DNA of 64,000 nt. Origin: Botryllus schlosseri (lineage: Eukaryota). The position numbers and the translations under genes were made by a program. Position 1 is the first letter of the stretch, and each line of letters opens with the position of its first letter. Below the pieces are notes generated by a model. It saw only the letters and a list, made by a program, of their open reading frames with translations. It had not been told where the DNA came from and made no database searches. Shown here piece after piece: positions 23,332-58,774 of this stretch. The stretch lies in contig CM119384.1 in assembly GCA_051294905.1 (NCBI GenBank), positions 5,270,001 to 5,334,000 of the forward strand, written 5' to 3'.

Positions 23332-26039
<2,708 letters not shown>

Positions 26040-37100: not shown

Positions 37101-40100
37101 GTAGGTGTTTCGATTATGAAACGTTCAACTCTAGAACTCCGCTTCTGTCAATGCTATCGCTTGTGTACCGTTTGCTGACTTGCAATATCAGATGCTACTG
37201 TTTCGAATGACTCATCTCGCTACCAAATTTCCAATCGGTATGTAAAAATAAACCGCTCGGTGGCGCTAATCGCATATCTTGTTATTGTGTCTCTAGAACA
37301 TTAAAAAAACTACCGGTCCTTGCTTGAGTTTGCAATTCATGCGGATCCGGGTCGCGATTTGGTGACAAGGCCAATCGCTAGTGCAAGGCTGAGACGTACG
37401 CAGATTCAAGATATGTCTCAAGTATAGGGCTTTGTCACAATGATTCAAGTACTCTAATCTGAATCCAGCACTAATTTATCAACGGGTCTCATAGTTATGT
37501 GCCATTTTACACTGCTGGAGGCTGTAAACCTCGATTGGTCGTAACGCGGTCTACGAAACATCTAGTGCAAAGCTACCCACGTCCGTGGCATTGTTATATC
37601 TGTGTAGTGTAGTCTTGATCAATCCATGGCATTGTCACAAAGTGCAATATCCGCGAAAAAATGCCAAATAATCTTTAATATGACATAGAACTGGCATTTT
37701 AATATGCGGTCGCATAAAAGGTACATTTTGAACTTTCGACATTATTCATACTGTTGTGACGTCCTAGTGAGTGATACTCAGGTACTCGATTATGCCCAGC
37801 CCTAATCTCAAGTCATGTGTCCCGCTGTCAGCCCGTATAACGGCACAAAGGTCGCGTTTTTGGTCCACGATTCGCGCAGTACACACGAGGTGTGGAGATA
37901 TTGGAATTTTGTAATCGAGATTTCGTGGCGCTGGCCACCTTCTTCAAACAGGCCTCCGCGTTTAAGCGATTGGTGATAAGCGATCATTAATCGCTTCGTG
38001 GCCCACCGATACCGCGGTCCGTTAATCGCGAAAATACAGAATACGAGATATCGATACGTTTGGAAAGGGCGGGAGTCACGAGGTCACAGTACTTTCCAAT
38101 ATGACCTTTACAGTTTACAATTAATCTTTACAAGCGCAGGGTGTTTACGGCGCTGACACCTTCGCCCCTGAGATGCACCGCCGTTGGCACGATTACAGAT
38201 TTAGTGCTCGTCTCTTCGCGATGCAAATTAGAAGGTTCCGATAGCTTACGTGTGTCGAGTGACGTCATAATTTAGAATATAATGCGGACTGTTACGGGGT
38301 CGCTTTACGTTATCGGAAAATCCGTATGTTGTGCTCAGAGCTGGGCAACAGAAAAAAATTTCAGATATTAGAATTAGTACTGTAGCTAAGCAATTAAGCA
38401 TTTTCCTACATTTTCCTAATTAAATTAGAATTAGAGCTTCGAACATAAAACTTGCGAATTGAATCGAATTGCGAATTCAAAAAAAAAAATCAAGCCATAT
38501 TTCCTTCTCGTAATCACAAACGTCTGTGCCCAGCGTTTCGTACTGTAACAGTTGTCCCCTAGCATATTCATGAACACTAGAAATAGATTAGAATTAAAAT
38601 TAGATCATAGAAGCATTTCACAAAGTAGATTGGAATTATAGTACCGGCATATCGCTGTAATTGATATAATTAAACTAGGATTATTTAGTTCTTAAAGTCA
38701 GGTCTGTTGTGGTTTTCATTTTTCCGGTCGCCGATTGCGCGGTGATCTATAGGCGCTCGTAGTCTGGACGCCGTCACGAATCTACCGGATTACGCCGAAA
38801 ATCGTGTCTAGTCTGCTGCGTTATAGACTTGTGACCAGACGGACAGTCACCGTGGTTCGCGCGGCAGGTGAAGGCCTCATTCGCCCGGGCGGCGTTGGAA
38901 GAAGAATAGCGTGTTTTACTGGATGGGTTCCATTAGTGCTTGGCACGATGATTCGAGTACTCAGATCTGAATCAAACGATTCGAACTGAGTAGCCAGACA
39001 TGACATAGTGGAATTACGCGCTCCTCGCCACAAAGTTTCGACTCTGGAAGCCTTGAAACTTCGAGTGCGGCCGTAACGCAGCACACGAAACGCAGTACAA
39101 ATCTATGCAGTTCAGTTGATCACGTTGGTGAAAAGGACGTTGGACGTTTCTGTTAAGTCGCGATCAGGTCACAGCATTTTCACAAAGTTCAATGAAGTAG
39201 TCATGGTCGGAACAACACAAAAATATCAATATTTTTATGTCGAACAGGCATTATGTTATATGTGGTAGCGTAACAGGTATATTGTTGAACTGGTCATATC
39301 TTCTCATATACAGAGATACTCGAATACTCACTTGACTCAAGCCTAATACTCGATTCAGAATCGAATTGGATGGAGAGATGGATCGCGTAGGCTTTGGATT
39401 GAGTTGGCTTTGGCGCCCTCATCGATTGATCCGACGTTTACGTTTCCGTAATTGATGTTATTTGTTTTTAATGGAGATGGGTTTCGGTTTAGTAAGTCGC
39501 AGACAAGCAAGTTCATTTGTGGTCAGGCAAAAATCGGGTCACGGGTGATTCCTTCCTGATTCGAGTGACAAGATACCGACCGAGTGTTCCAGTACCACTT
39601 ATTATGACGTGTACAGTACATCCGTGACCTAGAATAACTTGCCGTAGACCCGCAACCAATTTTGCGACCGTGAAGTAAATAAATATATCGATAGCATTTT
39701 CAATGAGCCAACTCGACTGTGATATAGCGGTATAGCCCACTTCGCAGAATATCGTTTGCATGAACGTGCGTCGTGCGTCACTTTGCGTTACATGGTTTTG
39801 AAAGATGTGATGCAGTCCGCCGACTTTTTCAAGGCTCCGGCGAAGTGAATTAGTACAAACAGACTGTGATTGCATTTGCGTATTGCGCGATCGGGTACGC
39901 GCTTTAGCAAGTAATTGAATGCTTTTGAAACTGTCGCGACACGCTGCATCGCGGCTTATTCATAACTGGCGGGATCTATCTTGGATTCTTGAAATCATGA
40001 CTGCCGCGTTCGCTGAAAGATGCTATCTTTACTCGCGACGTTATATAATTGACACCTGTACGTACATTGTGTGCAATGTGCAGGTGCGGTGCCAAGTTTT

Positions 40101-43100
40101 TCACTCATATCGCCCCGACATTTTAATTTCAGCTTGACGCACTACGTCTTATTTACAAGTCCGCAGCTGTTGTCAATGTTTAGTCATCGTTGGTAGTCAA
40201 GTAGAAGGAACGTTGAAAATTTACGGTCACGTAGAAGCATAAGTAGGCCCAGTTTTGCTCAAGGAAATGAGAACTGTCAAGTAAAAAGTAGAACCATGAT
40301 CACTTGAGTAAGTAATGCAAGCAGGTAAAATCTACTTGAGTACTTCGAATAAGTCGAATTACTTCGTTACTGACCACTAGGGCTGCTCAAAAATAACATT
40401 TTTTGCGGATTCCAGCCAGTCACTGAATAAATTGACGGGTTAGCCTTATAGGCGCTGCGCACCAAATTTCGTTCAATTGTACCCAGTATAAGCCGCCGCG
40501 GAGCCAAATTTAAATTGTTAATTTATTATGAAAATTAAATGAAAAAAAATTCAAAACTTTTTTTTACAACCCCATGAAATTGTTGTGTTGTCTTCAAATA
40601 CGATGCAAAACAAATTTGACTCAATTCCAACCCGTAGAACCGGAGCCATTTATAATTCTGGGATTATGGGAGTATTATGCTATTTTTGTAAACCCAGAAA
40701 TTTCAACTGCAATAACACTGCTTCTACGAGTTGGAATTCAGTCAAATTTGTTTTGCATCGGTTTTGAAGACAACTCAACAATTTCATGGCGTTAACAAAA
40801 AAATTTGAAAAATTTTTGAAAATTTTTCGTAATAAATTAAAATTTTAATTGGCTCTGCGGCGGCTTATACTGGATAGAATTTAACCAAATTTGGTGTGCA
40901 GTGTTTTAAGGGTGACCTGACAATTCGATCGGTGAGTGGCTGGAACCCGAGGAAAAAAAGTTATTTTTGAACAGCCCTACTGACCACCCATATAAAAACA
41001 AGTATTCTAGGCCTCTAGATTTGCCCAAAACACTGAAAATTTAAGTACAAGTAGAATTATAGAGTCTTAAATCATATCCGCGTAAGGAAGTTGTGCAAGC
41101 ACGCAAAATCTACTCTAGCACCTTGGAAAAGTAGAAATTACTGACCGCCTCTGTAAGTCTGCAGATCTTTGTGACACGCGCAACCAAAAATAATACCCGC
41201 TCGCGATCGCATTACGGAACTCGAGCGTCAAGAAAAGACCTTTGATTTGAATGTCACCTGCAGCTCACGTCTTCCACTTGCGTCACGTCCGGTTGGATAG
41301 ACTGAACCAGCGCCAATAAGCGCGCTGCGGGAATCTACACTTAGAGGAATTGCGATTACCGCAAATGTGCGCGTGCACGCATCGAAAATCGTGCCGCGCG
41401 ACGTTATTCCCACATCGCTATTGTGGAAGAAATGCCATTTGTTGACCTCAATATCGCTTCTTCTGATTCCGCGGGGGAAGTCGTTGGCCCGCATTGCCTG
41501 TTCTAGTATATAGCAGTTGTGGTTATTTCAGGCGAGATAGTGTCTCGTGAGTCGTGACAGCTCAAGTTGGGAAGTTTTTGTCAGCTCTTGGACTTGATGC
41601 TGCGTGCTTATAGCTAATTACTATGATATTTGTACGCGATTAGATGGGAGTATGGCGCGATTCCGGATATTGTCGGCGCGTATACAACTATACGTGCCGC
41701 GCTGAGTATGGGGTTATGACGTGGGAGCAAGGTCTGTAAGCTTCGTGTGCTGGGAATTAGCAAATAGCATAGATACAAAATTGTGGGTCGACATCTATTT
41801 GAGTGATGAGTAGTACGTCTGGGCGAAAGCGAGCAGCTGAGTGATTCGATACTAGGCGTCGAGTCGAGCGCACGAGCATCACTGATTATGACGTCATGAC
41901 AATGCGACTTATTTGGAAAATTCATATATTTACCTTTTAGCGACCACAAAGAGGATGGTCACACATTAAAAATTTGATTTTATTTCGACCATACCTTGCG
42001 CGTTGGGAGAAATTTACGGATTGATCACGGCTTCATAGAAATGTCGCTTCCACTTCCACTAACGGGCGTTGCTATGTCCTGCATGTTTTTTGGCTGCTGT
42101 GTTAACAGCAGAGCTAGATTTCAAGGTGGGAAGATAACATGAAACTAAACTTCTCGTTGATAACATAACTTGTACTGGCGTAGGCCGTAAAATTCCAGTG
42201 CCTGGAAAATAGTGTCTTAGTAGCAATAGTAGCAAGGTCGCCTGTCGCTGTATACGTGGCATAAGATCAACGCATAATCTCCAACTGCAGATTGTAACCA
42301 GCCAACGCCGAGAAGTACGCATACATTGCAAATTCGTGAACAAGACGACGCAAAATATGAAGACTATTGGCATTTGGCACTATTGGTTCACTTCGCAGAT
42401 ATTGTCACGACTAAAATAGTGATTCGGAGCAATGCCGATTTTCGACATACAGGATGGTTTCAGAGTGGTTCCAGTGCCGTGACTAGAATATAATTTATAT
42501 TTGCGAAATCAGCGCGACTGTAGCTTTCGCTAAGACCAGTTTTAATAACTTCTGCGAGCGGGTCGCCAGCCTTGAGATTGCTTGCCGTTTACCTGGTTGC
42601 GTATGTGGTGTGGTCTGATTGCTAGCGGTATCTGGACTTATCCTCACTCGAACGTGCATAACTGCTACGGGGTTGACCCTCTTGCGTGTGTACCGTGTAG
42701 TGTACATCTCGGTTTCGGCTTTGCGACATCATTTTCGTCCGTTAGACTGCAGAACAACAGAAGGGTTACTAAACTATTTTTAGCAAAGGTCCAGTTATAG
42801 AAGTTTAAAATTAGCTTAGGTCCGTTATAACTCTTCGTGAAGTAACTGACTGTCATACAAATATAATGCGGTATAACTAAACACAAAATTAGGCAAAGCT
42901 GTATTAGCTACAACCGAAATTTATTTCATGTTCTGTTAGTCACAGCTTTGTGGACAATTGGCTAGTTCTTTAAATATTGGTGTCCAATGTAAGGCTAGAT
43001 CGAGTCGAAGGCTGCATGGTGAAGGTTTTCGATGGTCAATGGTCAATTGGTCATACAGATGCGAAATCTATTTATAAAGTTCATGTTTGAAAATACGCAG

Positions 43101-46100
43101 CTGTAAGTAGACCCTAATCGACGTTGAATTTGCTTTTGAAAAGCTTCTTGGAGGTACAGAACTTTAATACACAATTGAATGGTATATTCATATTGTAATG
43201 AACTCTAATATTTTCGGCTGACACTCGTCAGGGTTAATCGTCAGCAACTATAGTAGAGAATGGAGAAGAACATCGTATATCAACAATCGTATCACCAAAT
43301 ATGCTTTTGGTGGAAAAATAAGTAAATACTGAGAATGTTACGATGCACCAAATGAGTATCAACCGCGCATCAACGAGCTTGTTGTATTTGAAATTTTTTG
43401 CGCTCTCTTACGTTTTCACTCTGATAACTTGCCCCGTTGCTCTATAAATCATATTTCGTATTCCCCGCCGCTTTCTTCTGAAGTCAATTGAGTTTGAGCA
43501 CGCCAGAGGGAATCAGGGCCAGACTTATTACCTATCGTCCCTCCGGATTGAGCAACGAGCAGGCATTGCAGTCTCGATACCAATCACCTCTGCGGAGATT
43601 TGTGGAGCGTAACACGCGTCACAGACTGATCTTGTCGGATATCGTGCTGCGTTCGGATATCCTATGCAACAATAATATCTCCAAACGGGTTATCTGGTGT
43701 CGCGACGCTGTCGGGTCCACATTACATGATTGGCCTAAATATAGAGCGCTAACATCGGGACACGACGCTGCTGTAATTTATTTTTGCGCGTCCGTTTGTC
43801 ATCTTACGCTACGGGGTTAGTAGTTCAAGGCCTGCGTGCTGGTTGGTTATTTCAGCTGGGTTTGTTCTGATGTGGCCAGAGTCAGACTTGGATAACTGGG
43901 AAATTTTCAGCTTTTCCGAAGTAGATTACAATTAGAATTGTTGCTACATCGAAAATTATATTAGAATTAGAATTACTGAATTCAAGAAAAATTGGACATC
44001 GAATGAAGTTTAGTTCATATTAAACCAGTAGTTCCCAACGTGGGCGATATCGCCCCCAGGGGGCGAAAATGACGAAGGGGGCGATAGGGGGACGAAAATG
44101 GACAAAGGGGGCGACGGGGGGCGATGACGCGTTAAAACGGCTGTATTGGAGTCAAGTCGGTGAAATGACCTTTTTTTTTAGTCATCCCACGAAAATTCAG
44201 TTGCAAAAGTGTAAAATTCATTTAGTCAACCCGCCGGTGATTACAGTTTGTATACTGATTTTTCGGTTCACAAAATTTGAAAAGGGGGCGATGAGTCGAA
44301 AAAGGTTGGGAACCACTGTACTAAACTATTGTTCATTCTCGTAAACAAGAGAGTAGCAAATGTCCGCACAGCAAGTGGAAGTGGAAGTAGAAGAAGCGTC
44401 GTAATTTATGCCCAGGTGCGAGTAGAAGTAGCGATTTCTGACTAAGTAAAGAGGCAAGTATTCCATTCGTGGAAGTGGAAGTATAGGCTAAAAGTAGACA
44501 AAACCTACTTGAGTACTCGAAAACGTAGAAGTACTTCTTTACTTACCACCTTTGGGTATGGTATGGGGCAGACTATTAGACAACTAGTTAATTCTAGTCA
44601 TCTATTTAGAATGAAATGCTGCTTTTCTCTAGTTCTAATCTGCTGCTTAAAACGCTATTTCTATGCTCTAATTTTAATTCTTATCAAATTTCTGGTTTTC
44701 CAAAAAGATGCTACGGGAGAACTGTGTAGTGCGAAACGAGCTAAGCCCACTGTACGGACATTAGCGTTTCCCGTGCTTATGAGCATGAGCTCTGATTAGA
44801 TATGAAGTTAACTTGCTTCAATTTACATGTTTTCACGAATTCAGTGCTTCTATTTCTGATCTAATTTGAAAAAAAACGTGTAGCTATAACTGTAATTCTA
44901 ATCCAACGTGGAATAAACGGTGTAGCTATAATTATAATTCAAATCTAATTTGGAAAGGCTGGAAATTTTTTTGGCCAACTTGGGTATGGAGCAGCTCCAA
45001 CAGCTTATTCAGATTTTATTGCTAGAAAGATCTGTATTGTCAAGGATTTATGAGCGCAGGAGCAGACACGGGCCTGGGCCCGGTGTAAAATCTGCTATCC
45101 GTCCTGAGAAACGTACCATTCGCTGGCGTAAACAAAACACATGATTTATTGCTCTTGTCGCCGCCGACAGCAGTGTTTGATTTTACGCCAATGCTGTCTA
45201 AAAGCGGAAATTTTGAAGCGATTAGCAGACAGCCGAAGACAAATCGACAGGACAAAAGTGCTGCGATCGGTACGCCGTGAGACAAGATTGATTAGGCTGA
45301 TTCGAAACTGTTGGGTACCATAAGAAAGAATAATAGCCATGGCCAAATTCGCTGAAAATGCGTTCATGTGGCGGATGAATAAAATAAGTTTCGGACATGA
45401 TTGATTAGGGCAGGTTCAGGTGGAAAATGACCAATTCATGAATCTTGATAAAGCTTGGTAATTCCTTTATGTAGCCCGCGCAAAACAGCACGTTTACAGC
45501 CGCGTTTCGCTATACTCTCCCTTGTTCATCATAGAAACTGTGCGAGTTCTAATTTCGGTTGTTTTGCATCATTTTGGTAATCGCTGTAGATTATGCCAGT
45601 AGTTCATCGAAGACGTCATTAGTTATTGATCATACCCGACTACTTTTTTGTGTGTTTCTCCGCACTGGTATATCAAATTGGCTGGCGATTGAAAACGGCA
45701 TTTTCTGGCCCGAGTTTCGATGTTGGCAGGTCGACGCTTTGTCATATGTCCGCCTGTGCAGTCTGAAAAGTCGTTCGTGGCTGGTGCTGGGATGATTTTT
45801 TGATTCTACTTGTTAGGAGAGTGTTAGTCAGCAAGTTATTACCTCAACGTTGGGCCCCAGACTTAGTCAGCTTGTTAGACTATTTATAGCGAAATGGTGG
45901 TAATCTGATTCTAATATAATTTGTGAAATGTTTCTAGGCTCCAAATTTAATCCTACTCTTATAAATTCTGGTTTTCCTGAAAATGATGCAAGAGAACTGT
46001 CTAGTGCGATACAAGTCAAGCTTGGTGTACAGACATATGTCATTCGCCTGCCTATCTGAGAATGGACTCGATTTTTGTTGTATTTCTTTGTATTCGGAGT

Positions 46101-49100
46101 TTATTTCAAATTCCAAGTTTTGGCGAATTCGGTAATGCTAAATCTAATCCGATTTGAATCCGATTTAGTTGCCCTAATCTGCTGGGTTCATGCCAGGTGA
46201 ATTGGATATGACGTAACAACGTATGTTGCTATTTAATCGGGATTGGGAGAATATTCGTGCATCGACTTCCCGTGTTGTTTTGTCTTTTATCAGTTCATCG
46301 GGTCGTAAAAGGTCGAATACAAATTAAAATCTGGCCCAACTCCACCGTCGATTCGAGGATGATAATATCGTTTTATGTTCTTGATATCGCTTTGCGTTGC
46401 AATGTAGGCTATTCCCAGGATACCGCGACGCATTGTACTCACGTCTTTTGGGGATTGGTTTGGAAAATATTGTGGGTCTTCGTGAAATTTGAGTCTGGGT
46501 TTGCGCGCCTGGTAACTGACATGCCGATAAATACGTTCGTAATGGCGAAGGCAAACTTGTTCCGTGAGTCGTGCGTGTAAGCGAAATGTTGCAGTAATTT
46601 TTAAGCGAATTTGTTATTAGACCGAAAGGTTCAGGTCGCAGTTTCTATAGTTGTTGGATACGCTCCCAAATCCGTAAAGGCATTATTTCATTGAGTTAAA
46701 ACGTGCGAGGTTTTAAGGAGTTACGTAAGGTACGAAATCACATCGTAACAATTACCGGGACATAGCGTTTCTTCTCGTTCGTAAGTTCTAGAAAAGTAAA
46801 CCTTGTGATCCTATGCGTCCATAGGAAATCGCTTTCTGTGAAATCGCAGCGCGCGCGCCCATCTTAGCCTACACGATTTTCGCAGTAACCTTCCGAGAAG
46901 TATCGAAATTCCCAATCGAGACCGTTCGCGTGCGTCTCTGCGTACCGCGCGTATCTAAAGTCGACCTCGTTTCGGTGAATTTCCGGACTAAAATAGGCCT
47001 TTCACGATCCGAGGCGCTGTCAAACATTGCTATTTGCGGCACAGGTTGATATTTATTACGTCCGTTCGCTACCATGGTTTTATGACACCATGATGGACAC
47101 GTACGCAAACTTCGTGAGTGACGTTACGATCCCCGCTTTGGGGAAAGACATTTTGGCGAAGATCAAGTTGGACCACGAAGACTCTGTGTGTTCGGATTAC
47201 AGCCTGTCGGACATTGAAGACGGGCTAGACCCGAACGAAAGCTTTGAATCCGACAAGTCTCGTAAAAACCCGGCCGTTACCGGCGTTGAATCGCCAGACC
47301 CGGCGCTGAATAGGTTCTCTTCCGATTCGAGCGGTATTTCCACGCAAGACTCGCCTTTCTCAACCATAGAGCGCGAGAGTAACGACAGCAAAATCGCCGG
47401 CGTGAAAACGGCTGTAGCGGCCATTGAGAACCGACATATCCAATCAGCGACCGCCGATAATGACGAAACAGACAGCGTGTCGCATTTGACCTTGCGGCCT
47501 AGCGTTACAGCGACGCGTAGCACGAATCTAGCGCGGCAGCGCAGCATGAGCCACTCTTTCGATAGGCCGAACGCCGCACGTGATTCTGATTCGGACAGAA
47601 ATAACAACAATAACGAACTTGGCATGAGAACATTACCAAAATATACCGATACCCTCGGTAATATGTCTCAGACGCAATGGAAGCGTTACAACAAAGCAAT
47701 GGAGACTTACAGACGGTGTAAACATGGGGAAAAGATCTCGAATAATTCGGCCGATAATCCCGGGAACGAAAAGAAACACAGAAGCCTGTCGCAGAACGAT
47801 CCGATTTACGAGAACGTGTCTGAACTGACGAGAGTTCAGCCTGCGACGAAACGTCCCGAGTTCGAACGCAGGACAAAGTCAATGTTGAACCCGTTGCAAT
47901 CGTCTGCGCCGTCGTACGCGCCGATCTGTCCGCCCGATCAACAGCAGGACGACTTGGAGACGTATTCCACACTGACTTTAGACTATAAGACCATTTTGCG
48001 CAGAAGCCACATTCCGGATAAGCCAGCATTGCCTCTTCCGACTGTAAATTCGATACGAGACGAATCGTTTTTGGACGAGGACGACCCCGACCTTGTCACC
48101 GACATTGACTCCTTTCTACACTTGCCAGAGAAGAAGGCAACACCGACAATATCAGTGACAACGAACCAGCACGATTCGTACGCAGTAGTAACTAATCACG
48201 TTACGAAAGAACCTGATAAGATTTTGTGGTCTGGATTGAAACTTTTGGGTGAACGTAAGAAAACCGAACTGACGCGGCCGAATTCGCCGAAAAGCGCGTT
48301 TATGTCGCGGATAAATAAGATGAGCTTGCGAAAAACAGCGACTCTCGCGTCCGAACAAGAAAATGCCGCTAATTTACGGAAAAACACGATCATCTCTAAA
48401 CGGAACACAGCCAAAACCACGCACCCTGAAAAATACATCTACCTCGACCCGGCGTCTCATAACGGCTGCTCCATGACGTCGTCGTTCGGACAATATCACA
48501 CTGTGGCTAGCGCGGGCAGGCTGTCGCGGATACGCAGAAAAAATGAGAAGATTGCATTATCGTCTCCCACGAAAAAGAAATCGATTCGTATACAAAGCGC
48601 GAATTCCTTCGCGCGGCGATTTCTGCGTGTGCCCACAATGTGGAAAAGCACGGCTAACGGCGTGGAGAGGCAAAAGTCTCAGAAGGTGGACACGTCTGCG
48701 TTTGAAGATGAGGTGGTATTGACAAGACGATACAGCCGTTCGGCATCGGACTTACCTAGTTGCCAAGACGCTGAATTTAAAGGCGTTACAGGATCGAGTA
48801 AATGCTCGAATAACAACAATAATTTCTACCAATCGTGGTCAGCCGAATCTTCGCCTCAGATGAAGGCAACGAAACGAAATCGCGCTAAACCATCCAAATT
48901 AGTCGTCGACATGAACACTGGGTCGTGCGAAATTGTTAAAAGTAACCTAAAATCACCTAGAAACTCACCAAGGTTGCGATTGAGTCCTGGAGGCCCACAC
49001 GCGAGTGTCGTTCAGCCTAGTCCTTCTCTGAAACCCAAAGTTTTGTTCAGAGCGCCGTCTGTTAAGAGAGACGGCTCGAGTGAGAGAAAATCTTTCCGGT

Positions 49101-52100
49101 TCACCACGTGTCAGTTTGACGACTTTGTGAGTGCTGACGTGTCTACGTTGGATTTGAACGTGGAAGAATATTTTTCTTTTCTGGGTACAAAGTCATCAGA
49201 GCTGACCACGCCCGATTCCGATCCTATCGATAAAGTTTCAGTGAAAGAAACCATTTCTACTTTCGAATCAAACTCGAATTCAAATGGGTCTGATGGTATT
49301 TACTGTGAGCGCGATCGTTCTCCGAGGAAGTCTCCGAGAAAAACGAACACCGTGAAACGTAGGAAGCAAAAGAAACGTATGCGGTCTGGAGTGCCGTCTT
49401 ATGTTCCCGATTATGTAAAACCCGTAAACGCTGACAGGATCAAGCGCAGCAGTGCTTTCTATCAGTTGAGTCTGCCCGAGGCAGACGCCAAACCCTCCGA
49501 TCCGAAGGTGCTGGACACGATGGCGGCGTTCATTAACGATGCATCGGTGCAGGGCAGGAGAAAGAACTCTGTCTCTATGGCGTCGAAGACTTGGAGCGGC
49601 CGGGCCGCGGAACGGCGTAAATCCAAAGCCAAATCGAAATTCGGCTCGCTTTCAATTGCGAAACTGTTGCGGGCCAACAAATTGAGGCTGTCCATTGGTA
49701 GGTTGCGCTTCTGGTTAGCTGGATCGGAGCAGTTGTATAAGATCTTAGATGAATTGCTGATTACGTGATTCGTTTTTGGCAATCATTGTCTTGAAAAGCT
49801 ATGAAAAGCTCTTTCAATCTTTTTCTTGAAAATCCAACTTTTAGAGTATGGACTTCGGAGTTGGAGAAGACTTGAGTGTGGCCAGTCAGAGGTTTTTCCA
49901 AATATTTTTATGTAATTTGCTCGATAACAACACAACGGCTCTCGATATCAAACATCTGTATAGTACAACGGCATAAATACAGTCACAAGTCAGGATTATG
50001 GTTTAATTAGGCTTTGACCGTTCAAATATGCGGGGTTGCTGTAAATAGACCATTGCTGTAAATAGACCAGATAGCAGTGAGAAGCAGTGAGAAAAGATGT
50101 TGATTATCAAGGACTATAACTAGGGCTGGGCATAATAATCCGAGTACTCGAATCTGAATCGAGTATTAATTCTAATAATTCGAGCAAGTAATGAAAGATG
50201 ATTTTTTCGAGTGATGAAATTAGATGCACCTTAACACTTGGAGTCAATTTATCAATGAGAGTATTTTCATGCTCGAATACTCTATTCAAGTTCAGAAATG
50301 GTCATCAAATTGATCCCTTAAAATATTTCAACGGCATTCCTCGGCATTTCATATTCGACACTATTCCATATTCACATTGCGATTGTTTGGTTTACTTGCG
50401 ACTGGATATCACACCATAATACCTGTAAATTATGTCATGCATTCTACATTGTGCCTTTGCATGTTGAACATGTCTTTCACACCATGCTTTTTTAGTGATA
50501 ATGTTGATGTACAACATTATTACATTGTAAAAACCACACCACGGTTTCAGTTGAACACGTTCGACCTAGTTTCGTCCCATCTCTAACAATCCGTTCATTT
50601 AGCAAAAGCCGTAAGGCCTCCGCCGCCTTCCACTCCGAGACCGCCAGGTATTTTGTGGTAGCAAGCGCATGCCAGATTATCATTTTCATCCGGAAGGCTT
50701 ATTTTGTTCGTTGATACAAATCATGCACCGGCAACAGTCGCTGATTTTCGGTGGGCAAATTGAAGCCTGGTGCGAATTTCCCAATTGTTTGACGTATATC
50801 CTGCATGAAAAAAACTTCTTATTTGACAGTATCAATGATTAAGCGAGTTTCAAGTTATTTTGTGCTGTTGGTGTTGCAAACTAATCTATAGCGTTACCTG
50901 TTATGATGATATATTCCTATTTATTTTTCATAAATCAGTCTCAATCCCCAAACATGCATCCCGTATGTCGTAATGTAATAGTCACTATCATACCGTGGGA
51001 ATATAGATAGGGAGAGGAAATGAGCGGCCTCTGAAACCGGACAGAATACTGCTCAGTAGATTGATATCACATAGTGTACCATCCTCAGAACATCACCTAA
51101 CAAATACGGCATAGATCTTCATATTCAAATGTATCTCGATAGTGTTTTATTTGGATTTTCATCTCCTTCATTTATAAGTTCTGATATCATAACTTATGAA
51201 GCGAAAATATGACATAATAATTTACACTTCTGGCAAAAATTTGTTCGCGTGATTTCATCAATCTTCGTCACGTTATAAATATGAACGCCATCTTTTTCCT
51301 TTGAACAACAAACAGCTCTTTGTTGATTTTCATATTTCTTTCGACTCGACTGTATATCGTTTTTAAAATGAACCAAATCGGCGGTTAGTCCTCACCCTCA
51401 TGAACGTTCATGAAAGCTCTGTTGGAATGTCGGATTTATTTTGCATTTCATCATCTTGTTGTGGAGGCTATAATATTTTATATCCAAATGTGGAAGCATT
51501 TGAATAAGTCTAGTTTGAAATGTGATGGACTTGACACTTGAGTTTAATTCCGCAGTGAAACAAATCTTGACTAACCTGATCGAACAGTGTATGAAATCTC
51601 CCACATTGACCGGATATTATAGAATCATAGAATTCACTCAGTAAAGGATACGAGGGTTTAAGAGTAGTATGTGAAGATGTGATTTCGATCACCAAAAGCC
51701 ATTTTGAGAACCGCGCTATGCAGTGTTGCTACTGGACCGTTACATGTAGTCATTGAACATCGACTATAGCGTGACCGATATTCATTTTACAGTTCCTTCG
51801 AATCAGCATGCGCCGAATATTCCGAGGTCGAACAGTCATTCCCTGCAAATTCCCGCCACATCGATTCAGGGAGGCGGGCTGGTGGAAGACACTAAAAAGG
51901 ATAAAAAGAGTAAAAAGAAAGGCAAGAAGGGAAAGCTGACAAAAGCCGACATCAGCACGCCGCAGGATTTCAAGTAAGTATTCTCCCGTTCACCTTTCAA
52001 TTCATTTGACCATCTTTGCTAAAGGAAATTTCCGCTGACTAGCTGCCACTCTATGTCTGGGCGTTGGAATATTTATATATGGTAGAATTGTGAAAATAAA

Positions 52101-55100
52101 CGTTCACTTCATGCTCAATCACTTCACCCTGATCGTTCGCTCTTGCCAGAATGGGTGATTTGTACTTTATCGACTGAGGAACAATCTTGTGAACTGGCAG
52201 TTATTACCTGTTAGAATGCTCTCGTGGTGTTTATGATATCGCCGGTGAACCTTAACGCCAGTTCATCGCTGCCATTATTTGTCCCTTTCACATCTACGGC
52301 CTTGTATGCAAGGAACAATTTTTTTTTTACGATTCAATACTCCAAATCTCAGTCATCATCCGTGCTATCAACATGGCGCAATTCAACCTTTATCCTTTTT
52401 CAGGCACGTCGGGCACGTAGGATGGGATCCCAACACCGGTTTTGATGTGAGTATCTTGCGAAACTCGGTACTCTGACTACTTCCACGTATTGAAATCCAC
52501 GTACTATTTATAGCTACCGTCACCGATTGACGTAAATACATTTTTGTTTCGGTTCTAGATGAATGAAGTGGATCCTGCATTGAAAAGTCTGTTCTCCGAA
52601 GCCGGAGTCAGCGATCATCAGCTGAAAGACAAGGAGACGGCCCAGTTCATTTACGATTTCATTGAAAAGCGTGGCGGTGTGGACGCGGTGAAAAAGTAAG
52701 ACTGATTGATGTACTCCTGTCTTGGCGTTGTAATGGACGGCCGCGCAGGGCTGTTCAAATAAAAACTTTTCCTGCAGATTTCACTGGCTACTTGATAAAA
52801 TTGTTAGGTTGGTTTAAAAAATCGCTGCACACCAACTTTGGCTCCATTCCAACCAGTAGAAGCGAGATTAGTGCAGTGGAAAGTTTTGAATTTATCATTA
52901 AAAAACAAAATTTCAAAATTTTTCTGCCGACCCCATAAAATTGTTAGGCTGTCAGTAGAGATGATGCACACCAAATTTGGCTCAATTTCAACCACTAGAA
53001 GCGAAGTTATTGCAGTAGAAAAATTTGGATTTGAATAAAATAGTATTTACGGTTTATTTATGATTATTTATCATAGAATCATGGAATTAGAAATTTTTCT
53101 ACTGCAATAACTTCGCTTCTAGTCGTTGGAATTGAGCCAAAGTTGGTGTGCAGCGTTTTTTTAACCAACCTAACAATTTTATCAAGTAGCCAGTGAAATC
53201 TGAAGGAAAAGGTTTTTTTTAACAGCCCTACCGCACAATTTTATTTCCGCTTCTCGTAAAGATATTTTGCACCTCGTTTGTAGATGTGGACAGAGGACAG
53301 TAGGCTAACTAAGTAGTAGTAGGTTTTGCTGACTTGCAATACTTGATCAAGTATTATGATTTCACTTTTACTTTAACAGTTATTAAAGCAAAACTATGTG
53401 TTTATACATTTTGGATTTTGAACAATAGAAAGTAGTCTTGGGACAAGATTGCATTCCTCTTACGAGTGAAATTGTCCCTGTATCACACTCACGCTAACCA
53501 GATATAGCGTCGTTGATTTTACCTGTTGTGTCATTGGCCATTTTGTGTAAGCAGTGGAGATACATCTTGTGATTTGGGTAGTCCCCCGGCAATTATGTAT
53601 TAATGCGACACCTCTACCAAATTCACTTCTAATTGAGTACTTTCCGTACCTTTCATTTTCAACATCCACTTGAAGTAGTGGTAATTGAACAAATTTATGG
53701 CATTGCTTCTACTTCTACTTGATTAATATGTTCCTGTTGAAATGAACCCGAAAGTTTTTGGCTGACACTCGACAGGGGTAATCGTCAGCAACTAGTAGAG
53801 AATTGGAAGGAACATTGTCTATCAACAATCGTATCAAGTCTTCAAAATCTGTACTTGCTCCCGTAAAAGAGTAGAGATTTATGGTGTTACTTGTACTTCT
53901 ACTTCAGTCGTAATGCTGACTAAATTGAGCAGCTTGTTCGATGCCAATGATATCTTAATTTCTGTGATTAGGCGTTACTGTTCATAATATTTCTTCTAAA
54001 CTGAAATTTTCTCGTTTGACAGGATGCAAAATCAACCACCTCCGCCACCACACGCAAACCGAGGACCAGCCCCGCCACCACCATCTCGCGGCGGACGTTC
54101 CGGTCCCCCACCACCGCCGCCCAGCAGAGGTGGCGGTCCGCCACCCCCTCCTCCGTCCAGAGGCCGTCCACCACCCCCTCCTCCCAGCTCTAGGGGTGCT
54201 CCCCCACCGCCGCCACCTAGTAGGCAGGGCGGTGCGCCACGTCCTCCGCCTAACATACCCCCACCGGCCCCGATGTCGTATTCGTCCGGTCCGCCTCCAC
54301 CACCGGCGCCTGCCCCGCCGCCGCCTCCTCCAGCTCCGAGTGCCCCGCCGCCTCCTCCCATGTCGGGAGGGGATGGAAGGGGTATGCTGCTGGATCAGAT
54401 AAGAGGGGTGAGTTGTTGCGTTGTCTTGAGGGTTTCTTCTGAAATTGTGGCCCACCTCGATATGTGCTTGATGCGCAATGTGGGTTTTTTAAAACTTTTT
54501 GGGGTAGTTGTATCAGCCCTCTATTGTGTCCGGCAAAACTTTTTGAACTGTGTGACCACGCTTAAATTAAATGTAGCCCAACTACAAAATTTTGGCAGCT
54601 GACGGCTAATGTTATCAATTTGGCCAAGTCGTAATCCTAATCACGGCTTGCTGAAAAAGGTCATCGCTTTCGCGCATCCCTCGTCACTGCCTGATTACTA
54701 GTTGGCAATTATTAGTGTTTGTATCATCCGTGTGGCTATTGTGGCCTGCCGTGAGCACTGGCAATGATACAAAATACGGACAAAAGTCAAACATAAGGAC
54801 AGACTTATAAATAAGGTCAATGTAATATTTTTGTTTATAGTTGTTGTTATATCACTGGCCTTTCATGGGCTCCTTGAAACGAGTTCGCGACTTCAGGTTA
54901 GGAACCTCTAGCGCAGGGGTGTCAAACAGATGATTTTATCCGGCCCGCGATGCGATTCTGAAAAATGGCCGTGTTATCCAGTACCTTTCTCACAAGTGTT
55001 GAGATTTTTCACGTATGAACTTAGAGCTCTTCAAAAATGACATTTTTCTCAAATCGTACTGGCTACTTGATGAAATTGTTAGGTTACCTAATTTAAGCCT

Positions 55101-58100
55101 ACACACAAAATGTGGTTCAATTCCAGCCAGTAACCGCTTTGCTACAGGAGAAGAAAGTTTCTATTTATTATATAAAAATAAATAATAAATTTCCAACCCG
55201 TGGAAGCGGAGTTATTGCCGTCGAAAAATTTGGATTTGAATAAAATAGTATTTACGGTGACCGATTCTTTGTTTATTTATTGTAGTTGTGCTCACCGTAA
55301 ATACTATTTTATTCAAATCCAAATTTTTCGACGGCAATAACTCCGCTTCCATTGGTTGGAATTGAACCAAATTTGGTGAGCGTCGTTTCTATAGACAGCC
55401 TAACACTTTCATAGGGTGAACAGAAAATCTTCAAATTTTTTATTTTTTATTTTTATATAGTAAATAGAAACTTTCTTCTACTGTAGCAAAGCGGTTACTG
55501 GCTAGAATTGAACCAAATTTTGTGTGTAGGCTTAAATTAGGTAACCTAACAATTTTATCAAGTAGCCAGTACGATTTGAAAAAAAAAGTCATTTCTGAAG
55601 AGCCCTAATGTACATAGGGCACCTACCACATTATAACCACCCGACAGTGGTGTTGCAGTTACACTGTAGTCACTATCAGCAACAAGTACAAGTAGCTGCC
55701 ATTGACACCCAAAATGGCCACTATGAGTTTAGTTATATGGAAATTGAACGGAAAAGAAGTTATTCGCAGAAGTAAAACGTCAGTTAGAAACCGGTGTATG
55801 CAAAAATACATATCGTCAGTCTATAAAACTATTCAACCGGCCAATCATCGTAATTTTGACAATTCCATTGTTTATGAGTAAGGTGTTGAAAGAATAGAAC
55901 CCTATGGTTCGTGATACAGCACATTTATTATGTATATAGGCTTGATAATTGAGTATTCAAGTGAAAAATATAGGGCATGGACTCTGAGGTAACATTCTGG
56001 AATCATTTGACTGGTCCGGCACGCGAGTGCTCTGAAGGTTTGAACACGGCCCGCCACGCAAGTTGAGTTTGAAACCCCCACTCTGGTGTAATGTCTACTA
56101 GTTAGTGGTAGAGTATTTTGGTTCCATCGACGACACATAGTCGGTTGTTTCTGGATGTCAGCAAGTTATCCTTTCTTCAGGGGGCTTCTCTCAAGTCTGC
56201 GGACAACAGGCAAATGGCCGACGCCCCGGCGCCGACCGGGCGCGACTCGCTACTGGATCAAATCCGGCAAGGAACACAATTGAAAGCTGTGAGTAGCGGT
56301 CGGGAAATTACATTTTTAAAATAATTGAAAGTGTTTGGTTTATATACACCATGTGTACTTGTGTTTCCGGCAATCCTACGTTCGTATCAAAATTAGAGGT
56401 CGACCGATATTGATTTTTCCAGGCCGATACCGATATATCGGCACACTCACGGGCCGATAACCGATATTATTATTGAAGGAGCAAAGTACAATTTCACCAA
56501 AAATATTATATATTAGGCAAGCTGGCACTTGTTCATGCCACAGAAAGCTGAACAACAAACGAGGAAGCTGATATTGAAAAGAATTATTGCTCAATTGTGC
56601 ACATTCGTTGAAAATTGGGATAACCCTAAAAACAAAACATGATACAGAATTGCAGATCAGTACAGAAAAGGTAGATTGTAATTCAGGAAGCATAGTTTCT
56701 CTGCATGCTCACCCAGTTAAATTCGTCCTGCAAGTGTAAATCTGTCATATATCACTCTTTGCGTCGTCGATTTCTTGAGATTGAGAAGACGGAGCATTGA
56801 ATTTCCAATAGTTTTGAATTTTTTTAAAATATAAAATATCGGCCTTCATAGGCCGATACGATAATCGGGAAAGCTCTAAATATCGGCCTCGATAATCGGC
56901 CATTCCGATAATCGGTCGACCTCTAATCAAAATCTTTTGGTGCATTGTGTACAGAGTTACAGACACTTGGGAATTTGAAAAGTAGAAAGTTGGATTGGGA
57001 TATGTCTTAATCACTTTCTAGAGTGAAATAGTCCCGAATATATATTTATATTTTTGTTTTCGTGTATGCAATAAACTAATATGTGATTTGTGACAGGTGT
57101 CACAAGACGAATCGCGAGAACGTGCCGCAGAAGAGGAAGAAGATGACGGGCTAGCTGGTGCTCTGGCAAGAGCTTTGATGCAGAGAGAGAAAGCAATTCA
57201 CGGTACGTATTCCGCAGCATGTAATTGCGCCAACTTCGGATACCTGTGGTGGATGGGTGTATCTATTTGACGAGGTGGTCAAAGTAGTCAAGAAGGCTAC
57301 TCAAGTAGAAGTAGCGACAAAAAATCTACTCAAGTACGAATAGAAGTACTTCTTCCATAAGCCACCTAAAACTACTTGAAGTAAAAGTAGAATTGACTGA
57401 CTTTAAATCTACTTAAGTAAGTAGTTGTGAAAACAGTCATAATTCGTTCGCATGGAGTGTCAAAAGCTGCAAATTGAGCTATGCGGAAGGTGCAGATAGA
57501 CTGATTCGTATTGATGCATCCCAGGAGGTATCAATTTCCGACAGAATAGGCATGCTTTCTCATCATGGGATGCAAATTATGGTATTGATATGAAAATGCG
57601 ATACTAACCCTTTGTTTACTAGAAGACCCCATTTTAGAGAATATCATAGCATGGCGCCCTACCCCATATTATAAAGGCCCCAGATTTAGGCGAAGACCAA
57701 TACAGAAAAGTTGTATACCAGAGACGGTTTCAACACTTTGTGTGATTAGTATTCGTTAATCACAAATATTGTGGATCATAAAATTTATATTTAGTGTAGC
57801 TTTGTTTTCGGAAAATAGAGGCATTACTACACTTACTTTTATGCTTCAGCATGTATGTTCTGCAGACAAAAGAACTGAAAGTAATTAGAACTAAAAGTAT
57901 GATACTCGGAATTGAAGGTGAAATACAAATACCACTGCTGAAAAGCGGAAAATATATTTCATTTCTTTTTTCCATAAAGCTTCAAATGTGATCTGCTAAA
58001 ACAGGTGTAACATTGAAAAAAGCCGGATTTTCCAGATTAGCAGGACACGTCATGGGCTGCTAGATTACGATATGATAGGTTATTGCTAGATTGCGAAACG

Positions 58101-58774
58101 GTAGTTTCAAACGTTATGGTGAGCCATATTTACGGTGATGAAGTATTTGATATGGGCGCTAATGCGGTGTGAGCGGAACCAAGCAATCCGGTACCTAAAT
58201 TATATTCACTGATACTTTCGTGAAAACATATTTGTTATTCCATACTATAATGTGCGCAAAGTGCAGCAAAATTCTGGGCTTTACTTTTATGAATATTAAA
58301 TGTTGGTACTCCGTGAAACCAGCCTGAAATTCCTCAGGCTATATTTCGTATTGGGGGATTAAACTACTTCTACTTGACAAACTGAAAATAGCGAAAAGTA
58401 AGTATGGAGATCACAAAATATTACGAAGTATAAGTAGAGAAAATCTGATCTACTTCAGTACGTACCAGAAGTAGAGGAAAACTACTTGAGTACTTCCAAA
58501 AAGTATAAGTACTCCGTTACTGACCACCAATGTCTATTTGTCACTGTCGACAATTATCTCGACTCTACCAAAGAAAATCACAGATTAGATTAGAATTAGA
58601 TTACCGACATTTAGTTCTAAATAGTCGAATTATGCAACTAGAATTATGTAGTTGTCCTAGTATGCCGGCGAGTAATGGACCGATGACGCAGCCGAGACTA
58701 TAAGCATTGTCCTTTCAGATTCCGATTCGGACTCGGACGAATTCCAAGAGGACGACGACGATTGGGACGACTGA
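31177..58774 (+). CDS. WASL: Neural Wiskott-Aldrich syndrome protein (N-WASP), canonical isoform 501 aa, 12 exons
   Basis: join(31177..31302,33022..33153,35072..35158,35749..35848,50603..50647,51793..51973,52404..52446,52559..52695,54023..54407,56181..56288,57097..57202,58719..58774) = 1506 nt, phases consistent. Domains: WH1 (STAVVQVF, CLVKDNPNRSYFIR, EQELYNQF, AGLNFAN), basic region KKDKKSKKKGKK, CRIB ISTPQDFKHVGHVGWDP, IYDFIE (Y256 equivalent), poly-Pro, two WH2 (LLDQIRG, LLDQIRQG), C helix GLAGALARALMQR, acidic DDDDWDD*. Exon 5 (45 nt) is the least certain. Confidence 0.93.
35460..35690. repeat. Interspersed MITE-like family (aagtagaagta/tacttgagtact; end motif gttactgaccac); copies at ~3715-3790, ~26200-26270, ~40195-40377, ~40990-41150, ~44370-44548, ~53670-53920, ~57275-57420, ~58365-58530
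   Basis: Recurrent gtagaagtacttcgttactgac(c/t)ac end and actcaagtagaagtagc body. Boundaries are approximate. Confidence 0.65.
40378..40979. mobile_element. Foldback (long-TIR) hAT MITE
   Basis: TAGGGCTGCTCAAAAATAAC...GTTATTTTTGAACAGCCCTA with ~200-bp inverted arms (ccagccagtcac/gtgagtggctgg, caccaaattt/aaatttggtg, gtataagccgccgc/gcggcggcttatac); perfect 8-bp TSD CTGACCAC (40370-40377 and 40980-40987). Confidence 0.92.
43211..43295 (+). repeat. Short interspersed repeat; copies at ~53757-53836(+) and ~33275-33325(-)
   Basis: Shared ggctgacactcg(t/a)caggg(t/g)taatcgtcagcaacta(ta)gtagagaa...tatcaacaatcgtatca. Confidence 0.6.
44026..44318. mobile_element. Charlie/MER-like hAT MITE
   Basis: TIR CAGTAGTTCCCAAC...GTTGGGAACCACTG; TSD TATTAAAC / TACTAAAC (7 of 8 match). 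Confidence 0.85.
47045..49768 (+). CDS. Long disordered ORF/giant exon nested in N-WASP intron 4: probable alternative N-WASP exon (47045..49697) or stand-alone 892-aa gene (ATG 47090..49768)
   Basis: About 2.7 kb without a stop codon in AT-rich intronic DNA. Composition is S/T/K/R/N/D-rich with no recognisable domain. Acceptor ...ttgcggcacAG at 47043-47044; accATGATG at 47090; GTAGGT phase-1 donor at 49698. Confidence 0.8.
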   Translation, partial: VDIYYVRSLPWFYDTMMDTYANFVSDVTIPALGKDILAKIKLDHEDSVCSDYSLSDIEDGLDPNESFESDKSRKNPAVTGVESPDPALNRFSSDSSGISTQDSPFSTIERESNDSKIAGVKTAVAAIENRHIQSATADNDETDSVSHLTLRPSVTATRSTNLARQRSMSHSFDRPNAARDSDSDRNNNNNELGMRTLPKYTDTLGNMSQTQWKRYNKAMETYRRCKHGEKISNNSADNPGNEKKHRSLSQNDPIYENVSELTRVQPATKRPEFERRTKSMLNPLQSSAPSYAPICPPDQQQDDLETYSTLTLDYKTILRRSHIPDKPALPLPTVNSIRDESFLDEDDPDLVTDIDSFLHLPEKKATPTISVTTNQHDSYAVVTNHVTKEPDKILWSGLKLLGERKKTELTRPNSPKSAFMSRINKMSLRKTATLASEQENAANLRKNTIISKRNTAKTTHPEKYIYLDPASHNGCSMTSSFGQYHTVASAGRLSRIRRKNEKIALSSPTKKKSIRIQSANSFARRFLRVPTMWKSTANGVERQKSQKVDTSAFEDEVVLTRRYSRSASDLPSCQDAEFKGVTGSSKCSNNNNNFYQSWSAESSPQMKATKRNRAKPSKLVVDMNTGSCEIVKSNLKSPRNSPRLRLSPGGPHASVVQPSPSLKPKVLFRAPSVKRDGSSERKSFRFTTCQFDDFVSADVSTLDLNVEEYFSFLGTKSSELTTPDSDPIDKVSVKETISTFESNSNSNGSDGIYCERDRSPRKSPRKTNTVKRRKQKKRMRSGVPSYVPDYVKPVNADRIKRSSAFYQLSLPEADAKPSDPKVLDTMAAFINDASVQGRRKNSVSMASKTWSGRAAERRKSKAKSKFGSLSIAKLLRANKLRLSIGRLRFWLAGSEQLYKILDELLIT
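50121..50290. repeat. TAGGGCTGGGC-ended MITE family fragments (gagtactcgaat repeats); also at ~1405-1462, ~37770-37803, ~39310-39370
   Basis: Recurrent tagggctgggc / gcccagc(c/t)cta ends with tactcga(a/t)t(c)gaatc repeats. Confidence 0.55.
52746..53230. mobile_element. Foldback MITE of the TAGGGCTG family (N-WASP intron 8)
   Basis: cagggctgttcaaa...ttaacagcccta with long inverted arms (cactggctacttgataaaattgttaggttgg / ccaacctaacaattttatcaagtagccagtg). No clean TSD. Confidence 0.85.
54914..56080. mobile_element. Charlie-like hAT element (CAGGGGTGTCAAAC end) containing a nested foldback MITE
   Basis: Left end caggggtgtcaaac...cggcccgc; right end cggcccgcc...gagtttgaaaccccca; flanks CTCTAGCG / CTCTGGTG (6 of 8 match). 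Confidence 0.6.
55022..55607. mobile_element. Foldback MITE (TAGGGCT-family relative)
   Basis: tagagctcttcaaaaatgac...gtcatttctgaagagcccta with two nested sets of long inverted arms. Shares aaatttggatttgaataaaatagtatttacgg with the 52746-53230 copy. Confidence 0.85.
56394..56925. mobile_element. hAT MITE with ccgat subterminal repeats (N-WASP intron 10)
   Basis: TIR TAGAGGTCGACCGAT...ATCGGTCGACCTCTA; perfect 8-bp TSD ATCAAAAT (56386-56393 and 56926-56933). Confidence 0.92.

Follow-up and report, generated by a model that had tools for sequence, protein, structure and literature searches.

The WH1 domain binds WIP-family partners, which stabilise and localise WASP proteins, and in canonical N-WASP, encoded by WASL, it heads the domain series WH1-B-CRIB/GBD-PRD-V-V-C-A. 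Kollmar et al. [quoted passage not shown] The same broad survey of the WASP family reported no alternative splice forms, with one exception in Aplysia (PMC3298513). [quoted passage not shown]

The window analyzed here is a 64,000-nucleotide stretch of the Botryllus schlosseri genome containing WASL on the + strand (Table 1). A WASL intron contains a same-strand open reading frame of 913 codons (47027–49768), the longest in the window by a wide margin, which an earlier reading of the sequence alone had proposed as a giant N-WASP exon. We consider it very probable that 47045–49697 serves ascidian N-WASP as an alternative 5′ coding exon, spliced in frame to the exons shared with the canonical transcript. 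A chance ORF is excluded by tunicate homologues, reaching E-values of 1e-227, and by the ORF being single-copy in its own genome (genome search); its length, its single occurrence, and its raised GC content (0.48–0.51 within the ORF vs. ~0.40 in the flanks) mark it as coding. The AG acceptor and the phase-1 donor proposed earlier are both present, and the donor is used in an assembled RNA contig. The host intron had been drawn as 35849–50602; the exon that bounds it, 50603–50647, is real but a minor cassette, and by reads the intron usually extends over 35849–51792.

Table 1. Positions, in window coordinates, of the WASL exons and of the giant-exon features in Botryllus schlosseri.
Feature	Positions	Strand	Remarks
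Canonical WASL exon 1	31177–31302	+	Start codon, N-terminal WH1; donor gt at 31303; not in long isoform
Canonical exon 2, WH1 core	33022–33153	+	Splice sites present; not in long isoform
Canonical exon 3 (WH1)	35072–35158	+	Phase-0 donor
Canonical exon 4, WH1 end	35749–35848	+	Phase-1 donor; mostly joined straight to 51793
AG acceptor	47043–47044	+	Precedes giant exon; position 1 of the X16 contig is 47043
Giant exon, coding part	47090–49697	+	869 codons + 1 base; start ATG 47090/47093
Phase-1 donor GTAGGT of giant exon	49698–49703	+	att g/gtaggt at 49697/49698; GT..AG joint 49697/51793 in the X16 contig
Intronic read-through tail of giant ORF	49698–49768	+	23 codons (GRLRF...LLIT) + stop; unconserved
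15-aa proline-rich cassette exon	50603–50647	+	Phase 1 in and out; flanked by ag and gt; minor in canonical transcripts
Basic-region exon	51793–51973	+	Acceptor AG 51791–51792; common to canonical and long isoforms
CRIB exon (HVGHVGWDPNTGFD)	52404–52446	+	X16 contig continues into CRIB letters
GBD/autoinhibitory-helix exon	52559–52695	+	
Poly-proline region + first WH2 exon	54023–54407	+	
Second WH2 exon	56181–56288	+	
Central (C) region exon	57097–57202	+	
Last coding exon, acidic tail with Trp	58719–58774	+	Stop 58772–58774

Splicing of the giant exon in B. schlosseri is documented by one public RNA contig assembled from one small run (X16). This contig, 3079 nt long, comprises 47043–49696/7, then 51792/3–51974, and then 242 letters of the CRIB exon, skipping the cassette; its joint is GT..AG with just one ambiguous base, which rules out a k-mer misjoin. 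In two bulk RNA-seq runs, of which ~6% was read, no reads crossed the 49697/51793 junction, and the depth of the giant exon was ~1–2% of that of the shared exon. The sequence-only reading had joined the giant exon to 50603; its prediction of splicing into the N-WASP exons was borne out, but the sole junction seen here leads to 51793, and the other junction it had proposed, 35158 to 47045, found no support. Most canonical transcripts likewise pass directly from exon 4 (35848) to 51793, as judged from 22 X22 and 5 X24 reads recognized at 51791/2 by the last letters of exon 4, while the 50647/51793 joint is represented by four X22 reads and one X14 contig.

The spliced coding sequence is open from ATG 47090 to the WASL stop codon and encodes 1207 amino acids without the cassette or 1222 with it. 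The WH1-less protein of 1222 residues predicted earlier is therefore reproduced in the cassette form, and the observed junction corresponds to 1207 residues; the longer form is a plausible second variant, since the Styela X1 protein has the cassette after its giant exon, as the proteins from Clavelina and Phallusia apparently do. The predicted canonical length of 501 residues depends in the same way on the cassette, without which it falls to 486. The long isoform lacks WH1/EVH1, as its start lies downstream of all WH1 exons (31177–35848); the Pfam WH1 model (PF00568) matches the window at 33010–33171 only (E 2.2e-7). As foreseen, the frame stays open through the basic, CRIB, poly-proline, and VCA regions: a basic region and CRIB/GBD (KKDKKSKKKGKKGK, then HVGHVGWDPNTGFD, then the FIYDFIEKRGG helix) are followed in the spliced translation by a C-terminal VCA with two LLDQIR-type WH2 motifs, GLAGALARALMQREKAIH, and ...DDDDWDD, and a tblastn search with the Styela C-terminus confirms the VCA exons.

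In the arrangement we propose, translation would begin at ATG 47090 and continue across the giant-exon donor to 51793, optionally through the cassette, and then into the CRIB, GBD, poly-proline, two WH2, C, and A exons. WH1 would thereby be exchanged for a basic, Ser-rich, and probably mostly disordered stretch of ~870 residues, with ~15 short motifs conserved among ascidians. Because the basic region, GBD, and VCA are kept, the product is expected still to act as an autoinhibited nucleation-promoting factor (NPF) for Arp2/3, activated by Cdc42, PIP2, and SH3 partners. Lacking WH1, it is predicted not to bind WIP-family partners, and its localisation or regulation would fall to the motifs in the replacement N-terminus, in a putative scaffold role.

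Compared with canonical N-WASP, the long isoform comes from the same gene and shares identical exons from 51793 on, but it omits the four WH1 exons and carries an 869-residue region without a known domain. Compared by domain order, it resembles WAWH type I, having a GBD, a proline-rich region, and VCA in the same succession with no WH1. It differs in its long extra N-terminus and in coming from a WASL gene that also encodes WH1 rather than from a gene of its own, since WH1 exons lie 11–16 kb upstream and are joined to the same downstream exons in canonical transcripts. With NHS/NHSL, as those passages describe them, it has in common that the choice of a 5′ exon swaps an N-terminal complex-forming domain and that a very long exon is disordered. 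The giant disordered exon and the N-WASP link had suggested kinship with the NHS family, which we reject for want of any sequence match: the Pfam NHS model did not match, and the profile search returned tunicate relatives only.

By gene models or gene order, every other ascidian examined shows the same arrangement. RefSeq models from Styela, Ciona, and Clavelina, all of them computed predictions, join a homologous giant N-terminus to PF00786 (CRIB) and PF02205 (WH2) and list no WH1. These are Styela clava LOC120329022 (XP_039251561.2, 1323 aa, and XP_039251559.2, 1339 aa; isoform X1 has the cassette and X2 lacks it, the difference being a homologous 16 residues), Ciona intestinalis LOC104266813 X2 (1514 aa), and Clavelina lepadiformis LOC143450749 X2 (1514 aa). 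They are orthologous, with the same start, motif series, basic/CRIB junction, and optional proline-rich insert of 15–16 residues; N-terminal identity is 21–37% and the proteins are longer (1323–1514 aa vs. 1207/1222 aa here). In Phallusia, protein CAB3263243.1 consists of the giant part and a tail from a downstream exon; in a related locus, this tail maps to an exon of its own, 1.9 kb beyond the giant ORF. In seven further tunicate loci on eight contigs (L005, L008, L009, L011/L012, L016, L017, and L018), the giant ORF lies just upstream of same-strand WASL CRIB/GBD exons, its end 1.5–3.7 kb ahead of the CRIB exon, and among the loci examined the family was never met away from WASL CRIB exons. 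In the other loci, the 10 kb preceding the giant ORF yielded no WH1 exon at usable E-values, so that the ORF's position in the same intron is there deduced from the downstream neighbors alone.

Conservation of the giant ORF runs from the first Met to exactly the phase-1 donor. At the donor, the homologous ORFs read G-R-Y, G-G-Y, or G-K and diverge beyond, into unrelated read-through tails of 4 to 65 residues; in all species compared, the donor retains phase 1, as the next exon requires. The cross-species check suggested with the original prediction thus came out in its favor for the homologues, the WASL-adjacent position, and the donor-bounded conservation, and the 23 residues after the B. schlosseri donor are, as it had supposed, intron read-through.

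How the 5′ end of the long isoform is made admits several answers: an intronic promoter, an untranslated leader exon, or spliced-leader trans-splicing at 47044/47045 could each supply it, and a splice acceptor lies 30–60 nt before the ATG in all six loci viewed (this one and five others), which makes a 5′ leader exon or trans-splicing equally possible with an internal promoter. Trans-splicing is common in ascidians, and the same long isoform could arise without a promoter of its own if a leader were trans-spliced to 47044/47045 from WASL pre-mRNA or from a far-upstream transcript, in which case isoform choice would be a decision between cis- and trans-splicing. Known ascidian spliced leaders end in AG; besides the acceptor conserved in six loci, the X16 contig begins at 'AG', two bases before the exon boundary. 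Against this, the contig carries no leader letters, a TATA-like taaaata ~40 nt before 47043 is equally compatible with local initiation, and a Ciona-type leader pattern, used as a tentative query, has only one exact copy in the genome. With up to one mismatch, the pattern has 30 copies, vs. 11 for a control. We treat trans-splicing as possible but on balance doubtful. Still less likely, in our view, is the fuller proposal of a second, WIP-independent N-WASP with a tunicate-specific, motif-rich disordered head that is selected by trans-splicing at the intronic acceptor and not by a second promoter. If true, this NPF isoform switch would have no reported counterpart among WASP-family genes; it might go with a particular cell type, for instance the one sampled in X16.

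The ORF could also be an independent nested single-exon gene whose translation ends at 49768 and whose transcript is polyadenylated short of the next WASL exon, with the spliced form as occasional noise. It is uninterrupted and has its own stop, gene callers report it as a stand-alone ORF on genomic contigs, and an X14 contig runs unspliced from 46308 across the donor to 50630, which fits pre-mRNA or DNA and would also fit an unspliced transcript. However, a scan found no AATAAA on the + strand between 45384 and 52094, extending the earlier remark that none lies between the ORF stop and the next exon. Conservation that ends at the donor, the matching phase, the spliced X16 contig, the three RefSeq fusion models, and the constant company of WASL CRIB exons all argue against a nested gene, which we judge very improbable. 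A gene with its own 3′ end and no splicing to the host would moreover be at odds with both the spliced contig and the lack of a + strand AATAAA before 52095.

Most improbable of all is the mutually exclusive internal exon also put forward in the sequence-only reading, in which exon 3 (35158, phase 0) would join 47045 to give 1352 residues with half a WH1 domain and the giant region: no stop interrupts the frame between 47045 and the ATG, and the AG acceptor has similar counterparts in five other loci, but the X16 contig begins at 47043 with no exon-3 letters, the homologues and RefSeq models all begin at the homologous Met with WH1 listed in none, and joining exon 4 to 47045 instead would meet an immediate stop (g+gt tga). 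A start at ATG 47090 is therefore favored, on the strength of those homologous starts and of a contig without upstream exon letters, whose first position makes the AG at 47043–47044 the 5′ limit of the known mRNA.

A literature search turned up no description of a tunicate N-WASP that is long or lacks WH1, and nothing relevant for C. elegans wsp-1. If the long isoform is as we describe it, a whole chordate subphylum keeps a second N-WASP product in which a long disordered region bearing conserved motifs takes the place of WH1, offering a natural experiment on the contribution of WH1 and WIP to N-WASP control; reporter, knock-down, and live-imaging tests are routine in Ciona and Phallusia. Annotation would also be corrected, as the Styela, Ciona, and Clavelina models, all named "uncharacterized protein", would become long N-WASP isoforms. 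Interest is tempered by the restriction to one lineage, the prior presence of the isoform in unnamed computed models, its low abundance in two bulk RNA samples, and its putative function.

The giant N-terminal region itself matched no Pfam family, nor did ten distant relatives. A profile search of 1.84 billion representative proteins gave 13 matches, all of the giant-exon family: those with a named source are ascidian, the remaining ones adjoin WASL exons, and no vertebrate or other non-tunicate homologue was among them. The profile found nothing among PDB sequences at E-values up to 1, and the look-alikes in the ESM Atlas were unnamed clusters, the best of which scored 0.86, below a meaningful level. 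The region is predicted to be mostly disordered: 67% of its residues are disorder-promoting, its net charge is +37, and AlphaFold2, run on a 14-sequence alignment, returned a mean pLDDT of 42 and no folded domain, with confident helices at residues 192–212 and 805–829 only.

The giant open reading frame between the WH1 exons and the basic-region exon of the N-WASP (WASL) gene is part of that gene, as supported by an RNA contig, annotation in other ascidians, and gene order. The sequence-only reading, which had taken it for an N-WASP exon, is essentially correct. This alternative 5′ coding exon replaces the WH1 head of N-WASP with a disordered, motif-bearing region of ~870 residues, and the resulting long isoform keeps the basic region, CRIB/GBD, proline-rich region, and VCA. 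The ORF is the longest in the 64-kb window, with a GC content of 0.48–0.51 vs. ~0.40 in its surroundings. Direct inspection recovered the features attributed to it earlier: an acceptor AG at 47043–47044, the donor g|gtaggt at 49697|49698, a read-through tail of 23 codons after this donor, a small exon at 50603–50647, and no AATAAA on the + strand between 45384 and 52094.

Exons of N-WASP (WASL; + strand of the window, genome of 495 Mb) and position of the giant ORF
Feature	Position	Strand	Remark
WH1 exon	31177-31302	+	
WH1 exon	33022-33153	+	
WH1 exon	35072-35158	+	
WH1 exon (exon 4)	35749-35848	+	
Giant ORF	47027-49768	+	913 codons, ATG 47090; between exon 4 and basic exon
Basic-region exon	51793-51973	+	common to both isoforms
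CRIB exon	52404-52446	+	common to both isoforms
GBD exon	52559-52695	+	common to both isoforms
Poly-Pro + first WH2 exon	54023-54407	+	common to both isoforms
Second WH2 exon	56181-56288	+	common to both isoforms
C region exon	57097-57202	+	common to both isoforms
Acidic tail exon	58719-58774	+	common to both isoforms

Four public RNA runs were mapped onto window positions 46100–52099. In this species, the giant-exon junction is represented by one 3079-nt contig from a single small run, X16, whose tissue of origin is not given. The contig covers 47043–49696/7, crosses a GT..AG joint to 51792/3–51974, and continues for 242 letters that correspond to the CRIB exon; with only one ambiguous base at the joint, a k-mer common to both sides cannot have caused an assembly misjoin. 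The spliced coding sequence reads without interruption from 47090 to the stop codon at 58772–58774 and encodes 1207 amino acids. An isoform starting at ATG 47090 without WH1, as proposed earlier, fits these data; its computed length of 1222 amino acids stands for a form carrying the 15-residue cassette exon at 50603, although the predicted joint from the giant exon to 50603 was not the one seen, as the contig runs 49697|51793 without the cassette. About 6% of the reads in the two bulk RNA runs were sampled; among these, the giant exon reached ~1–2% of the depth of the shared exon, and no giant-exon junction reads were caught. A contig from another run, X14, passes unspliced through the giant-exon donor and looks like pre-mRNA or DNA, since X14 also covers the other introns. 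The X14 contig also lacks a 282-bp intron stretch (50055–50336), with TTAC in its place. Over this stretch, the summed X14 contig depth reaches ~3156 vs. ~25 nearby, many reads end at its borders, and the only inverted repeat within it is a weak one of 14 nt; this pattern suggests a short, high-copy repeat or transposable element whose insertion is polymorphic.

Annotation in other ascidians agrees with the RNA contig. Four RefSeq proteins, all computed models, combine a homologous giant N-terminus with CRIB (PF00786) and WH2 (PF02205), and WH1 is listed in none of them: Styela clava XP_039251561.2 (1323 aa) and XP_039251559.2 (1339 aa), Ciona intestinalis LOC104266813 X2 (1514 aa), and Clavelina lepadiformis LOC143450749 X2 (1514 aa). 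Phallusia CAB3263243.1 consists of the giant part and a tail, the latter matching a separate exon 1.9 kb downstream in a related tunicate locus, L009. Gene order is also consistent: in seven further loci (L005, L008, L009, L011/L012, L016, L017, and L018), WASL CRIB and GBD exons follow the giant ORF on the same strand, with the CRIB exon starting 1.5–3.7 kb past the ORF end, and the giant family was found nowhere away from these exons. Two samples each contain two clearly distinct giant-exon-plus-WASL loci (ERZ22157276, L011/L012 and L017; ERZ25067582, L016 and L018), reflecting either mixed tunicate species or a WASL duplicated with its giant exon.

The giant ORF is coding and conserved. A word-based protein search returned four relatives (E 4.5e-227 to 2.3e-61), and a profile built from them matched 13 proteins, and nothing else, among 1.84 billion representative proteins; a further search that started from the Phallusia member brought in the Ciona and Clavelina proteins. 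The genome of this species contains one copy of the giant exon. An alignment of 14 sequences contains invariant islands (DYSLSDI..L, K.Y..A...YR, DY, TDID, I.W, and NLR..I..RN) separated by freely varying sequence, with more invariant positions towards the C-terminal end of the region. Conservation begins at the Met and ends at the donor, past which the genomic ORFs continue with G-R-Y, G-G-Y, or G-K, i.e., the GT donor in translation, followed by divergent tails of 4 to 65 residues. The region has no Pfam family, no relative in the PDB, and no meaningful look-alike in the Atlas. AlphaFold2 gives it a mean pLDDT of 42, with confident helices only at residues 192–212 and 805–829; by composition, it has 67% disorder-promoting residues, 13.8% Ser, and a net charge of +37.

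Two origins of the 5′ end fit equally well. The long-isoform mRNA may be trans-spliced or leader-spliced, consistent with a pyrimidine-tract AG 30–60 nt upstream of the ATG at each of the six loci inspected and with the X16 contig starting 2 bases 5′ of the exon boundary; or it may start locally from an internal promoter, downstream of a TATA-like taaaata at ~47001. The alternative model, splicing of exon 3 to the giant exon to give a truncated WH1, finds no support: the X16 contig is devoid of upstream exon letters, and every homologue begins at the same Met. A splice from exon 4 to 47045 would meet an immediate stop (g+gt tga). Two consecutive ATGs (47090 and 47093) form the main start, and an upstream ORF of three codons (atg gtt tta tga; 47075–47086, +) lies between the acceptor and this start.

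By extension from established N-WASP biology, the long isoform would still be an autoinhibited, Cdc42/PIP2/SH3-responsive Arp2/3 activator. It would be unable to use the WH1–WIP interaction, so the conserved motifs of the new N-terminal head may instead govern its location, stability, or partners. Its architecture equals that of type-I WAWH (‘WASP without WH1’), which are genes of their own in amoebae, Apusozoa, and Anolis (Kollmar et al. 2012, PMC3298513); unlike WAWH, the ascidian form is one isoform from a gene that also encodes WH1, and it carries a long additional N-terminus. The same WASP-family survey reported no alternative forms save one Aplysia exon pair (PMC3298513), a statement to which the ascidian long isoform is an exception. 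Our literature search found no description of this isoform, and databases carry it only as ‘uncharacterized protein’. The giant exon is a real and conserved feature, and the long isoform is lineage-restricted and of low abundance in the samples read.

The optional cassette adds another case of alternative splicing, the second, to a gene family in which such events are said to be almost absent. It encodes a proline-rich segment with an SH3-ligand-like motif (RPPPPSTPRPP) and is spliced into only a minority of the canonical N-WASP transcripts of this species. Reads that carry the last letters of exon 4 at 51791/2 number 22 in run X22 and five in run X24, whereas the 50647 to 51793 joint appears in only one X14 contig and four reads from X22. 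The predominant canonical product is thus the 486-aa protein, the 501-aa cassette form being minor. A stretch of 16 residues (KMQRPPPPSSPRPTAA in the alignment as printed), placed exactly between the giant and basic exons, distinguishes Styela X1 from X2; it is the homologue of the cassette.

Two further ORFs lie upstream of N-WASP on the + strand. A full-length MINDY deubiquitinase domain (PF04424, E 5.6e-92) occupies an uninterrupted 468-codon ORF (28682–30088) that ends ~1.1 kb 5′ of the N-WASP start codon; the choice lies between a single-exon gene and a retrocopy. The ORF at 25145–25630, in a GC-rich patch (0.52), encodes a tubulin C-terminal domain (PF03953, E 1.2e-32) and probably belongs to a tubulin gene as one of its exons.
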